Shown here: positions 3,460 through 52,293 of the stretch, piece after piece
How the letters are laid out: the number at the start of each line of letters is the position of its first letter
How positions within the stretch are numbered: position 1 is the stretch's first letter
Sequence record: LC727695.1
Direction: 5' to 3' (one strand)
Length of the DNA stretch: 64,000 nucleotides
Notes under the pieces: model-generated
Databases searched by the model: none
Seen by the model: the letters and a program-made list of their open reading frames with translations, nothing else
What the model was told of the DNA's origin: nothing
Program-made: the position numbers and the translations under genes

Positions 3460-3706
3460 TTTTCATTTTTTCCAATTTTTCTATTTTCAAATTAAACGGT
3501 ATTGGCTTTTTATAGCCAATCCCTTATTACTAAAAGTAATAGATTCTCGAACTAAGGATGGGTTATACCCCTTCTCTAATAATAAGGAATATTATATGGG
3601 ACCCCCCCAAAGGGTCCCCCCCACATAATATACTATTTATATAATTTTCTTTTTAGAAGAAAAGAGATAAATAAGAGAAATACAGTCTATTAAAGTAATG
3701 AATTTC

Positions 3707-5449: not shown

Positions 5450-5479
5450 CATAAAGCCTCCCCTAGGGGAGGCGATATG
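5450..5479. terminator. GC hairpin flanked by CATA...TATG
   Basis: GCCTCCCC-TA-GGGGAGGC at 5456-5473. Confidence 0.8.
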
Positions 5480-31420: not shown

Positions 31421-31521
31421 TTTTAAACTCCAACTAATGTATTAAAAAAATATGTCTATATTGAAAATAAAGCCCTCCCCGAAGGGAGGGTGTATGTCGC
31501 CAATAAGTGTTACTAATTTAT

Positions 31522-37700: not shown

Positions 37701-37726
37701 ACACCCTCCCTTAATTGGGAGGGTGT
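37701..37726 (+). terminator. hairpin between nrdA and nrdB
   Basis: ACACCCTCCC-TTAATT-GGGAGGGTGT; core repeated at 39377-39398. Confidence 0.8.
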
Positions 37727-39368: not shown

Positions 39369-39453
39369 ACATAATGACCCTCCCTTAATTGGGAGGGTTT
39401 ATGCTAACAATTCTATAGCACTCTTATTAACAGTCATCAACGAGAGAGTAGAC

Positions 39454-41394
39454 ATGAATAAAATGCTAAACTTCCTAAACCGTACGCTATATAGCGGTAC
39501 TGAAAAAGTATCTTCAAAAGCTACACCAAGTCTAGAACACTTTAAAACAAATGTTGAACAAGTAGATAAAAAGATTCTACAACCCTTTAGTACTAAATTT
39601 AAAACCATTCTAAAAGAATGTTACAGTAATGAGGAGTGGGTTGAAGAACAATCATTTATTGAAGAACCTATTGATCTTGGTTCAGCTGCACGCGGTCTTA
39701 CCGAGCGCGGTATTATGCGTGGTGATTGGGGACGCTTAGCGCATTCCACTATTAAAGAAGCAGAAGGTATGATGCGTACTTATAGTGGTCGTCTAAATGA
39801 AGATATGGAGGCATCTGAAATTAATGAAGTAATTCAAGATATGCCTTATAACTTCACAGCTGGCTCAGCTAATACTAGCCGTTTAGAAGAAGATGACTCT
39901 ATTTTTGTTGAAGCAGATACAACTGTAGTTGAACCTCTGTCTAAGCAGACTCTGCCAAAAGTAGCAGAGCTTACTAATCAATTAGTGGAAGTCTATAACC
40001 GAATTACTGAAGAATTTACAGAAACTGGTATTGCTAAAGTTGAACAAGTTGAACAGCCAGCAGTTCTTTTAGCACTTGGTGAGATCATTAGTAGTTTTAA
40101 TAAACTAATTGATTTATCTTGCGGTGCTCTACCAGTGGAAGAAACTGTTATTGTAGAGGAGGATCCGTTACCTGCCATTGTTACTGGTCCAACTACTGAA
40201 CCCATTGATGGTGAAATTCTACCGGTTGATGCTATTAATAATTCTGCGGCATTAGAAGAATTCATTGAAGAAGTATTAAGTACTAATCCAGAATTCATTA
40301 AATATCAAAGTATGAATGATAGTAATATTGATTCATATCTAACTGGGGATGACTGGATTATACTGAAATTCAAAGATGGTTCTTATTATTTATACAATGC
40401 CCAAAGTGCCGGTGAAACGAATATAGAAATCATGAAAGATATGGCCGAAACTGGTAGTGGTCTTAATGGTTTTATAAATCGGGTTATTCGTGGCGGGTAT
40501 GTAGAGAAGTCCATCATTAATACTCCCGGTTTTATACAAGTCTCAAATGAAGGTCTTATCGATTCAATCAAAAAAGTTCTTGGCATTTCTAATCGAGGTG
40601 ATCAGAAACGTATCTGGCGTTCATCGTCCAGTGCAAGAGGATTTCTGGAACAACTAGAATCTACATTTGGCAATCCACAATGGCTTAATAAGCAGGTATT
40701 CGTTACTGGCGATATCAATAGTAATGGTATAGCTAACGTACTGAGTATTAATGGTAAAGTCAGTATCGAGGATGCCATTCGTGCAGTAGAACCATTCTTC
40801 AAACTCGAAGAAAAGTCTAATCGCGAAATGGAGTCTTACAGGCAGAAGACTAAACCTGCATTGGATCTACTCATTAAGAATGCACATAACCTAGACGCTA
40901 ACGTATACAAAGAAGCAAAGGCTATCGTAGACAAGGCACGTGCTGGATTCAAGACTAGTGTTAAATGGCCTGCCGGTACTATTACAGGTAAGGGTACCTA
41001 TAATTCACCTCGCACCGTGGTCGCGAAATATCCATCTACTGATAGTAAACTCAAAGCTCTTACTGAAGAAGAAGCAGCTAAGGCCATGAACTTAATTATA
41101 TCGGCATTGGAACGTCAGATAACTCTTAGCTTCAAGTTCCCTGATTTACCAGATCCACTGGAAGGACTAATCTACGATATGTTGGATAACCCTAGTCCAA
41201 TAGCTGGTATCGATTACTATGATTGGAATGATTTGTTATTCGCATGCTTTGGCCCTGGGATTGATGATGATGTGATGGAAGTTAATAAAATGCGGCAATA
41301 CCACTCATTCATTGATATCATGGAGGCCGCCGCAAAATGGGTAGATCGGTCTATAAAAGGTAGGTTAGCAATGGGTAATGAAAACTACCAGTAA
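39454..41394 (+). CDS. internal head/ejection protein (gp303-like)
   Basis: 646 aa; S/A/G-X-E prohead protease sites (ALE, SNE-GLIDSIKKVLG, C-terminal GNE); gene order. Confidence 0.7.
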   Translation: MNKMLNFLNRTLYSGTEKVSSKATPSLEHFKTNVEQVDKKILQPFSTKFKTILKECYSNEEWVEEQSFIEEPIDLGSAARGLTERGIMRGDWGRLAHSTIKEAEGMMRTYSGRLNEDMEASEINEVIQDMPYNFTAGSANTSRLEEDDSIFVEADTTVVEPLSKQTLPKVAELTNQLVEVYNRITEEFTETGIAKVEQVEQPAVLLALGEIISSFNKLIDLSCGALPVEETVIVEEDPLPAIVTGPTTEPIDGEILPVDAINNSAALEEFIEEVLSTNPEFIKYQSMNDSNIDSYLTGDDWIILKFKDGSYYLYNAQSAGETNIEIMKDMAETGSGLNGFINRVIRGGYVEKSIINTPGFIQVSNEGLIDSIKKVLGISNRGDQKRIWRSSSSARGFLEQLESTFGNPQWLNKQVFVTGDINSNGIANVLSINGKVSIEDAIRAVEPFFKLEEKSNREMESYRQKTKPALDLLIKNAHNLDANVYKEAKAIVDKARAGFKTSVKWPAGTITGKGTYNSPRTVVAKYPSTDSKLKALTEEEAAKAMNLIISALERQITLSFKFPDLPDPLEGLIYDMLDNPSPIAGIDYYDWNDLLFACFGPGIDDDVMEVNKMRQYHSFIDIMEAAAKWVDRSIKGRLAMGNENYQ

Positions 41395-41407
41395 TGTATC
41401 TAATATT

Positions 41408-41545
41408 ATGTAGAAATAATCCCTCCCCCTTGTTTCTACATTAGTCATAATAGATCGGAGCCAGTCCCCCTTCCAACTGGCTCCCAGAGAGTAAAACTCT
41501 TTGCTGGGCATTAATGACGATATATCGCCTCCCTTCGGGGAGGCT
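41408..41545 (+). ncRNA. candidate sRNA with C-rich anti-SD loops
   Basis: TATG start motif, two 9-bp hairpins with CCCTCCCCC / CCCCCTTCC loops, closing terminator 41527-41544. Confidence 0.55.
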
Positions 41546-41607
41546 TTATATTTTGTTTTTACGTATGTATATTAAAATATGTATAAACAACATAGAGTAA
41601 TTATAAA

Positions 41608-42060
41608 ATGATCAAAAATGAACTTTTACCAGGGCTAATCTATGCCCAAAAAGAATTTGATAAAATTGCAGCTAATGTAAAAGACTATGATAAGTATAAA
41701 AGACGCGAAGCTGGTAGGGCAAGTGCCGTTTTAAGAAGTCTAGTGAGCAATATTGTAAATCAGAATAAACCATCCTCACTTGAACATGAAGGCAAAGTTA
41801 GTACTACTAATACTAATGAATATTTAGAAGAAGTTAATAATTACTTCTTTAACATTAATAATATTAAATTAATTTCTCCTAAACTCATAAAAGAGAAATT
41901 AACAATTGATCTAATGAATATTTATGTTAAATGGAATATGATTGGAGTGGCTGGCCGAAATGATGTTCCAATTATTGAACACAGAATTAATGATTGGTGC
42001 GAAGTGACCGATGTCTACATTAATGGTAATAAGATAACTTCTTTACAATGGCCACGTTGA
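41608..42060 (+). CDS. hypothetical protein
   Basis: 150 aa ORF. Confidence 0.7.
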   Translation: MIKNELLPGLIYAQKEFDKIAANVKDYDKYKRREAGRASAVLRSLVSNIVNQNKPSSLEHEGKVSTTNTNEYLEEVNNYFFNINNIKLISPKLIKEKLTIDLMNIYVKWNMIGVAGRNDVPIIEHRINDWCEVTDVYINGNKITSLQWPR

Positions 42061-44959: not shown

Positions 44960-45170
44960 TATGTAAGAGTACTATAATAAAGTATTCTTAAATCTATCCA
45001 CTAAACACACTCGGTGGTAGAACTTATTATAGAGTGTGTCTAAATGCCAGGGGTTTGCCACCCCTGGTTATATTCATTGTTACTATTATAAATTCATTTA
45101 TAGATGAGAAAAGGTTTTATCACCTTTTCAAAATCGGCATTTAATTCCAGTTAAAAAACTGAATCTATGC
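44960..45170 (+). ncRNA. candidate structured RNA/leader
   Basis: TATG followed by five hairpins of 7-10 bp. Confidence 0.4.
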
Positions 45171-45914: not shown

Positions 45915-46001
45915 TGGTAAGTACCCGAGTGGCAGCAGGGAGCGGACTGTTAATCCGTTGGCGAAAGCCCACCGTAGGTTCGAATCCTACCTTACCAGCC
46001 A
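45915..46001 (+). tRNA. atypical class II (long variable arm) tRNA with GUU (Asn) anticodon
   Basis: TGGTAAG/CTTACCA, G73, CCA; D arm CCCGAGTGGCAGCAGGG; GCGGA-CTGTTAA-TCCGT; V arm GGC-GAAA-GCC; GTAGG-TTCGAAT-CCTAC. Confidence 0.88.
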
Positions 46002-52273: not shown

Positions 52274-52293
52274 GCCCTCCCCGAAGGGAGGGC
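52274..52293 (-). terminator. intrinsic terminator
   Basis: GCCCTCCC-CGAA-GGGAGGGC. Confidence 0.85.

Follow-up and report, generated by a model that had tools for sequence, protein, structure and literature searches.

The window analysed here is a 64,000-nt stretch of record LC727695.1 from phage Brmt, a phiKZ-like jumbo phage of Pseudomonas aeruginosa that is 99.8% identical to the phiKZ reverse strand. Our subject is a structured small RNA (sRNA) of 141 nt (41410-41550, + strand), which lies in a 213-nt gap (41395-41607) between the homologues of PHIKZ303, a virion structural protein (39454-41394), and PHIKZ302, a protein of 150 amino acids and unknown function (41608-42060). The genes all run on the + strand. 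PHIKZ302 is the first gene met by read-through and is followed, on the same strand, by tRNA-Leu, Pro, Met, Asp and Asn. The gap maps to phiKZ 273952-274164 (minus strand), the PHIKZ303-PHIKZ302 interval, and coordinate mapping, fold and covariance model equate the sRNA with phiKZ TU237/T131 (approximately NC_004629 274009-274149, minus strand). As a transcript, it is already published and not new. Putzeys et al. 2024 (microLife, PMC10914365) described an abundant 141-nt phiKZ RNA, TU237, ending at T131 upstream of PHIKZ302, which was detected by ONT-cappable-seq and confirmed by northern blot, alongside a longer read-through form with the same 5' end. It is one of 17 function-less phiKZ non-coding RNA (ncRNA) candidates; no structure, motif or function was given for it, and conservation of such RNAs was mentioned within the genus only (Putzeys 2024, PMC10914365). 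In the published literature, we found no paper that assigns the sRNA a function or mentions C-rich loops. Newly defined here, and well supported, are its structure, a cross-genus family spanning at least three genera, the covariation of its stems, and its conserved C/U-rich loops.

Transcription would start at a TATG core (41407-41410, +), recognized from the sequence and the published consensus of the phage non-virion RNA polymerase (nvRNAP), whose late promoters read TATG, transcription beginning at the final G (+1; Yakunina 2015). The TATG is invariant in 13/13 sequences, namely all eight Phikzvirus representatives and five distant homologues, and G(A/T)TATG is common to all of the latter. 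G41410 is the probable 5' end, given the TATG and the published length: from this base to 41550, just past the only terminator of the gap, the distance is exactly 141 nt. The earlier note on this DNA had predicted a discrete + strand RNA of about 135 nt, and the northern-confirmed species fits 41410-41550, complete with its own TATG start and terminator. A dedicated promoter and terminator yielding a discrete short RNA is one of the features of trans-acting base-pairing sRNAs, and it is present here. We regard the identity of the RNA and its structure, taken together, as very nearly certain.

The placement of the start was checked against another published ncRNA, whose 5' end at phiKZ 270595 (window 44964) lies one base away from the G in an identical copy of the ATATTATG motif. 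This ncRNA, 3' UTR_PHIKZ298 (UTR, untranslated region; about 44960-45074, +), is preceded by the same ATATTATG motif as the sRNA. Its start beside the G supports its authors, who regard it as a primary transcript from the 5' UTR of PHIKZ297; C-rich loops are absent from it.

From the sequence, it is ambiguous whether the promoter is of the middle or the late class. At 41381-41389 (+), AAAACTACC matches the published phiKZ middle-promoter motif AAanTTACc at 8/9 positions and is centred at -25, while in relatives the TTAC core is placed at -21 to -18 instead. Some phiKZ middle promoters also carry TATG (Yakunina 2015). The RNA had been called late; the late consensus is indeed present, but TATG is the single element behind the assignment, and since AAAACTACC resembles a middle-promoter motif, late expression is not settled. 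Differential RNA sequencing (dRNA-seq) at 10 min did not list the sRNA among those reported, which suggests that it is not early.

The 3' end, near 41550, is set by an intrinsic terminator found in a terminator scan (41527-41560, +), which consists of a GCCUCCC/GGGAGGC stem (41527-44), a UUCG loop and an interrupted U tract. The stem pairs with probabilities of 0.99-1.0, even in a 271-nt read-through context to which 130 nt of downstream sequence were added, and in that context no antiterminator or other helix competes with it. The terminator belongs to a stereotyped module used genome-wide, (G)CCCUCCC, a loop of 4-6 nt and GGGAGGG(C), which is often palindromic and works in both directions (for example at window 5457-5472, 31473-31490, 37704-37723, 39378-39397 and 52275-52292). 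Almost every C-rich or G-rich run of this AT-rich genome comes from such modules, as do the repeated weak matches to the sRNA model. Between the terminator and PHIKZ302, a second TATG (41578-41581, +), seen in sequence and alignment, is kept in 8/8 relatives and may serve PHIKZ302 and the tRNAs as a promoter of their own; a further TATG at 41564-67 is not conserved.

Structurally, the sRNA consists of a 5' hairpin, a three-way junction bearing two hairpins, and the terminator hairpin, an architecture that is well supported. The 141-nt RNA has a minimum free energy of -51.6 kcal/mol (z = -5.56), and none of 200 shuffled sequences was equally stable. A 166-nt stretch reached -55.8 kcal/mol (z = -5.85), and the opposite strand was weaker (z = -4.07). 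All elements drawn in the earlier note were recovered. Hairpin 1, first drawn as ATGTAGAAA/TTTCTACAT (41408-16/41433-41, +) around a 16-nt loop, has its stem at this position, but three extra pairs reduce the loop to the 10-nt, C-rich UCCCUCCCCC (41420-41429); the extra A-U pair is backed by a double change from A-U to G-C. The stem counts 12 base pairs (bp) in the DNA and 10 bp in the RNA if G41410 is +1 (41410-41439, +; fold and covariation). Hairpin 2 was found as drawn, with a 9-bp stem, GGAGCCAGT/ACTGGCTCC (41457-65/41476-84, +), holding the loop CCCCCTTCCA (in RNA CCCCCUUCCA, 41466-41475), and is likewise backed by fold and covariation. Hairpin 3 (41485-41503, +), proposed as AGAG-TAAAA-CTCT, is present but longer, with an 8-bp stem, CAGAGAGU/ACUCUUUG, and an AAA loop, again by fold and covariation. 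The predicted helix enclosing hairpins 2 and 3 also proved correct: in the 141-nt fold, GUCAU (41444-48) pairs with AUGAC (41514-18) and closes the three-way-junction domain (41444-41518, +), yet the same helix is only about 0.06 probable in the read-through context. The proposed TTCG terminator closing the unit is likewise in place (GCCTCCC-TTCG-GGGAGGC, 41527-44, followed by the T tract).

Both C-rich loops are unpaired with a probability of approximately 1, also in the read-through context. Loop 1 contains 8 C in 10 positions and loop 2 contains 7 in 10, compared with 18.7% C (36.9% G+C) in the DNA, giving binomial tails of 4.7e-5 and 5.7e-4. When both strands of the 278-kb genome were scanned for stems of at least 9 bp with at least 7 C in the loop, these two hairpins alone were found. 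The impression that C-rich loops are conspicuous in this AT-rich DNA is thereby confirmed.

The stems covary across genera while the loops are kept. Loop and stem counts were made over the 13 sequences, and the covariation score was computed on a MAFFT alignment of 10. In that alignment, 95.5% of the cells in hairpins 1-3 are paired, and five pairs (16 cells) have changed on both sides; the covariation score of 0.282 compares with 0.186 for shuffled controls, 0/500 of which reach it. As a control, partners slid by 1-3 columns gave just 38-48% paired cells. Hairpin 2 keeps nine of nine pairs in all 13 sequences despite five stem haplotypes, with compensatory changes at two positions (G-C/A-U/C-G and U-A/U-G/C-G). 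Hairpin 1 covaries, and hairpin 3 has one compensatory position plus several changes that keep a wobble pair. For the closing helix, whose pairs were read by hand, every lineage has its own sequence, yet the two sides are always complementary: GUCAU/AUGAC, GAUCACA/UGUGAUC, GACCACA/UGUGGUC, AACCGCA/UGCGGUU and, in PhiPA3, CUCGG/UCGAG. Loop 2 ends in eight bases, CCCUUCCA, that do not vary in any of the 13 sequences. In loop 1, a CUCC core is present in 12/13, as UCCCUCCCCC, UCACUCCU (Pawinskivirus) or CCUACUCCU (PhiPA3), the exception being reference phiKZ with CUUCC; the loop sequences of the relatives are UCACUCCU, CCUACUCCU and AACCCUUCCA. Conservation of the loops in relatives had been set in advance as a test, and across three genera the loops are kept while the stems drift with compensation. 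Unpaired loops, CCCUUCCA in all 13 sequences, CUCC in 12 and covarying stems together are what a conserved, accessible single-stranded seed looks like.

Within the genus, for which eight representative Phikzvirus genomes were compared, the sRNA varies at 12 columns only. Of the stem changes, one is a double change in hairpin 1 that replaces A-U by G-C, three alter a single side and leave a wobble pair, and one breaks an end pair. The two loop substitutions, one in loop 1 of reference phiKZ (CCUUCC in place of CCUCC) and one in loop 2 of PA7-MZ444140, are both C to U, and U can still pair with G. By itself, the eight-genome set has little power to tell loop conservation from stem conservation. 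The sRNA forms a conserved island: in T2P it is identical at 140/141 positions, compared with 77.5% identity in the adjoining PHIKZ302, and in most genomes the upstream gene is swapped for another allele right up to the promoter. The PHIKZ303 homologue occurs as two alleles, with the breakpoint at the sRNA promoter (window 41350-41396).

A covariance model built from the eight Phikzvirus sequences found the sRNA as a single copy in the genome (190 bits) and revealed no paralogous sRNAs there, the remaining matches all being the terminator module. Outside the genus, BRkr carries the RNA at the syntenic site, after RNR-beta, a gp304-like gene and a virion gene and before tRNA-Leu/Pro (46 bits, E ~1e-10). 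Among Pawinskivirus genomes, PA1C, phiHQ and HHBS36_1 have an RNA identical to that of BRkr, and those of phiLBG22, PS119XW and HPP-Temi are 90-92% identical to it. The latter three and PhiPA3 (Miltoncavirus) scored 52-55 bits, with E down to ~1e-12, all at the syntenic site, and reciprocal blastn from BRkr to the phiKZ-like phages gave ~72% identity (E 4e-4 to 2e-7). We conclude that a structured RNA family occupies the same place in Phikzvirus, Pawinskivirus and PhiPA3, after RNR-beta/gp304/gp303 and usually before the tRNA cluster, and this is well supported. In Pawinskivirus and PhiPA3, the RNA has an extra 3' domain before the terminator, predicted to be mostly unpaired, which contains CCCCUCCUUUC (Pawinskivirus only) and UCUCCUUGUUGUGUUGAUG (both) and is deleted in the phiKZ lineage. 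The loops of the phiKZ lineage are more C-rich than those of the relatives bearing this domain.

Two possible short relatives lie downstream of RNR-beta, one in 201phi2-1 (locus L157, 12609-12725, minus strand; 19.6 bits) and one in Viktualia (locus L160, 1479-1582, + strand), the latter with 88% blastn identity to the 201phi2-1 copy. Both have a TATG start, a 5' hairpin, a UCUCUCCUUU stretch predicted to be mostly unpaired, the same GUGUUGGUUG stretch and a terminator, without hairpins 2 and 3. From these features they may be shortened relatives of the sRNA, a weak possibility; the 201phi2-1 element may also correspond to an intergenic sRNA already reported for that phage. Searches of wider collections were less productive. 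A loose two-loop pattern in IMG/VR gave 119 loci, all noise, and the covariance model found nothing in 100 of them; an 18-nt loop-plus-stem pattern in JGI metagenomes gave 14 chance matches and no homologue. A hairpin-2-specific pattern returned PhiPA3 and PA7 only in IMG/VR, and relatives of the PHIKZ302 protein were found there in PA7 only. Within the neighbouring tRNA cluster, ARAGORN called a tRNA-Asn (GTT) of 87 nt (45915-46001, +), which exceeds the usual length of an Asn tRNA by about 10 nt and has an Rfam score (53.7 bits) below those of the other tRNAs. The BRkr annotation holds a similar 87-nt tRNA-Asn, and the call may reflect a long extra arm or a misassignment.

Taken as a whole, the data make it well supported that the locus is a real, independently transcribed phage sRNA gene, from which read-through transcripts do exist. 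The strongest selection appears to act on unpaired C/U-rich stretches, namely the CUCC core of loop 1, CCCUUCCA of loop 2 and the CCUCCUU/CUCCUU stretches of the relatives. The 3' tail of 16S rRNA reads CACCUCCUUA. Accessible CU runs in every homologue have 5-7 consecutive bases in common with this tail, except loop 2, which has 4; the extra CCUCCUU/CUCCUU stretches of the relatives, predicted to be mostly unpaired, are identical to it over 6-7 nt. The loops had been described as anti-Shine-Dalgarno (anti-SD) loops, which agrees with the CUCC core of loop 1 and the 16S-tail-like runs of the relatives, but less well with CCCUUCCA, which is not a canonical anti-SD sequence, or with CCUUCC in reference phiKZ.

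The best-supported reading, which we adopt tentatively, is that of a trans-acting RNA whose C/U-rich seeds are directed against purine-rich sites; a protein decoy and a cis-acting leader are its main rivals. It is well supported that nvRNAP initiates on the G of TATG (41410) and that the majority of its transcripts end at the intrinsic terminator, giving the 141-nt RNA. This RNA would act in trans by pairing its seeds with purine-rich sites of the GGAG/GGAAGG type, such as SD regions, and the pairing would block access of the ribosome to the mRNA. Candidate targets would be mRNAs of the host or a limited set of those of the phage. Conserved loops on covarying stems favour a trans-acting C/U-seed RNA over a cis-acting leader.

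The proposal that early phage mRNAs are silenced gained no support from a survey of translation starts. GGAGG precedes 1/94 starts in the window, where AGGA is found at 49 and GAGG at 24, and 7/362 annotated starts genome-wide, where a GGAAGG SD is found at none. The rarity of GGAGG at phage starts makes early phage mRNAs improbable as targets. Because the SDs of most phage genes are short, the targets are likely host mRNAs or a few phage mRNAs; weak phage SDs, which an anti-SD RNA would spare, fit a host-directed role.

Several observations weigh against the trans-acting reading. Duplexes between loops and phage starts (-5.4 and -5.0 kcal/mol) are only slightly better than those with random coding windows (-4.05 and -4.5 kcal/mol), and phage-side scans gave no convincing target for a trans-acting sRNA. 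The only phage sequences strongly complementary to the loops are terminator 3' arms, of which there are dozens, all of them paired in their own hairpins, and a single G-run leader. The match of CCCUUCCA to the 16S tail spans 4 nt only, and loop 1 of reference phiKZ is without CCUCC. The resemblance of the motifs may be partly compositional, C-rich sequence being the stock material of phage terminators. With UUUAUA at its mapped end, the RNA has a poor 3' U tail of the Hfq type, and silencing of the host may be of little matter once a middle or late RNA has accumulated.

The rival that survives best, although we consider it improbable, is that the C/U-rich loops bind a host or phage protein, so as to titrate or recruit it; candidates would be ribosomal protein S1, a factor that reads the 16S 3' tail, or a factor that reads the CCCUCCC 5' arm of terminators. 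The loops are held rigidly on long stems, and their conservation, with eight invariant nucleotides, goes beyond what a short seed would require. In dozens of phage terminators the 5' arm has the sequence of loop 1 and the UGGGAGGG 3' arm pairs with loop 2; the RNA is also abundant (Putzeys 2024, PMC10914365), and all of this would suit a decoy. No candidate protein is known, however, the RNA matches no known protein-binding RNA family, and multiple scattered copies of CUCC(U)U are more typical of base-pairing seeds.

Slightly less probable again is a cis-acting 5' leader or attenuator, in which the terminator meters transcription into PHIKZ302 and the tRNAs and the short RNA is mainly a by-product. 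Conditional premature termination is the reading of Putzeys et al. 2024 (PMC10914365), and it agrees with the shared 5' end of the short and full-length transcripts (Putzeys 2024, PMC10914365) and with the position of the RNA ahead of the tRNA cluster in phiKZ, Pawinskivirus and PhiPA3. Against it, the terminator is paired at 0.99-1.0 without an alternative antiterminator fold in the read-through context, the C-rich loops are not complementary to the ribosome site of PHIKZ302, and the downstream partner varies, being PHIKZ302, tRNA-Leu directly, two small open reading frames (ORFs) or, for the 201phi2-1 candidate, a convergent gene. The mutually exclusive folds of an attenuator or riboswitch were not found in the read-through context of the sRNA, nor was a constant downstream gene found among the relatives. 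A TATG is kept in 8/8 genomes between the terminator and PHIKZ302, and attenuation would leave the invariant loops and covarying stems unexplained. The uncontested terminator, the varying downstream genes and the downstream TATG argue for an independent RNA gene over a dedicated leader. We also considered loop 1 as an antiterminator acting on the 3' arm of the terminator and rejected it, as the terminator has its own 5' arm, adjacent and just as complementary, and its stem is formed at ~100%.

Far less likely is a specific phage-phage pair, in which the C-rich loops bind the G-run leader of the PHIKZ038-PhuZ transcript and tune this operon. The leader (about 3598-3627, minus strand) lies in the gap between PHIKZ037 and PHIKZ038, the latter being followed by the PhuZ tubulin gene, and consists of TATG and then GUGGGGGGGACCCUUUGGGGGGGUCCC with two G7 runs, which fits a G-quadruplex motif or a GGGACCC/GGGUCCC hairpin. 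Terminators aside, no other G-rich stretch occurs on either strand of the 278-kb genome, and on paper the leader is the best accessible complement of the C-rich loops, with predicted duplexes of -18 to -19 kcal/mol. Cofolding, which cannot model loop-loop kissing, nevertheless gave almost no net gain, the G runs pairing internally. PA1C and Psa21 have the G-run promoter and hairpin with almost no base changed, and Viktualia has a variant of them; the genes behind them differ. Sequence search found no sRNA homologue in Psa21 and at most a short relative without C-rich loops in Viktualia, which means that the leader must serve some role of its own; it is conserved in Pawinskivirus too, whose loops hold CCC only. 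An identification of this leader with the published ncRNA "5' UTR of p40" was rejected, because the annotation shows the gene to be PHIKZ038.

Least credible of all is that the locus holds no RNA gene, merely the 3' UTR and terminator of PHIKZ303 or a small coding ORF: a minus-strand ORF of 48 amino acids (41365-41511; 40-48 among relatives) is open in all eight relatives and annotated as a hypothetical protein in several GenBank records, yet its substitutions are almost all amino-acid-changing while the RNA pairs stay, so that it is probably a spurious call; on the plus strand an ATG is present in only 4/8 genomes and the other ORF is lost in SL2 and PA7, and the published + strand transcript with its own 5' end and the cross-genus covariation speak for RNA.

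Returning to the trans-acting, C/U-seed RNA, its most specific form would be a conserved jumbo-phage mimic of the 16S anti-SD tail, which masks GGAGG-type sites of the host and biases translation towards phage mRNAs with weak SDs; we hold this version to be doubtful. In jumbo phages, transcription takes place inside the phage nucleus, apart from translation, and host ribosomes are retooled; if the proposed function is true, the sorting of mRNAs by SD strength through an RNA would be a new layer of this host takeover. Independently of this, one function-less phiKZ ncRNA now has a covariation-backed structure, a family spanning at least three genera and conserved unpaired motifs, and these motifs point to a concrete mechanism, pairing with purine-rich ribosome-binding sites. 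Should the mechanism prove wrong, the family and its invariant CCCUUCCA loop would still constitute a well-defined unexplained element.

Comparison with known RNAs places the sRNA outside described families. None of 4227 Rfam families matched the locus at its gathering threshold, only sub-threshold matches being seen at E up to 10, and ARAGORN found no tRNA or tmRNA there. The best weak match on the + strand, in a 241-nt search, was ar14 (RF02344), at 19.7 bits against a gathering threshold of 58.8 (E = 0.076), a score so far below threshold that it indicates analogy, not membership. The likeness to cuckoo RNAs drawn in the earlier note thus holds in part: ar14 ranks first, but its CCUCCUCCC loop motif is found neither in the sRNA loops (UCCCUCCCCC, CCCCCUUCCA) nor in those of the relatives. 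Like the ar14 cuckoo sRNAs, to which the CcsR RNAs of Rhodobacter are related, the sRNA shows tandem hairpins with C/U-rich CCUCC-type loops; unlike them, it is phage-borne, has other loop motifs and adds a three-way junction. By analogy, we take the resemblance to be convergent.

Among phage RNAs, the stable RNAs of T4 sit in its tRNA cluster. Other jumbo-phage sRNAs include a phiKZ sRNA upstream of gp182 and sRNA005 of 201phi2-1 (PMC11512511). The sRNA described here is, like all of these, short and structured, with promoter-proximal termination and conservation between giant-phage genera, and as with some of them it lies beside tRNAs. It differs from them in locus and sequence, and C/U-rich loops have been reported for none of the others.

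The proposed mode of action has counterparts in bacteria and in T4. In Firmicutes, hairpins of RsaE/RoxS and RNAIII present unpaired UCCC loop motifs that pair with G-rich SD sequences and block initiation. The C-rich unpaired loops are shared with these RNAs, which are bacterial whereas the sRNA is viral and has no RsaE match in Rfam at E up to 10. The T4 endoribonuclease RegB inactivates mRNAs via a GGAG SD and thereby shifts translation during infection. If the mechanism postulated here is true, it would make this the first anti-SD sRNA known from a virus and place it beside RegB as a counterpart made of RNA, with host mRNAs more often carrying GGAGG-type sites. The comparison is a functional one only: RegB is a protein nuclease that cuts its targets, whereas the proposed sRNA would mask them.

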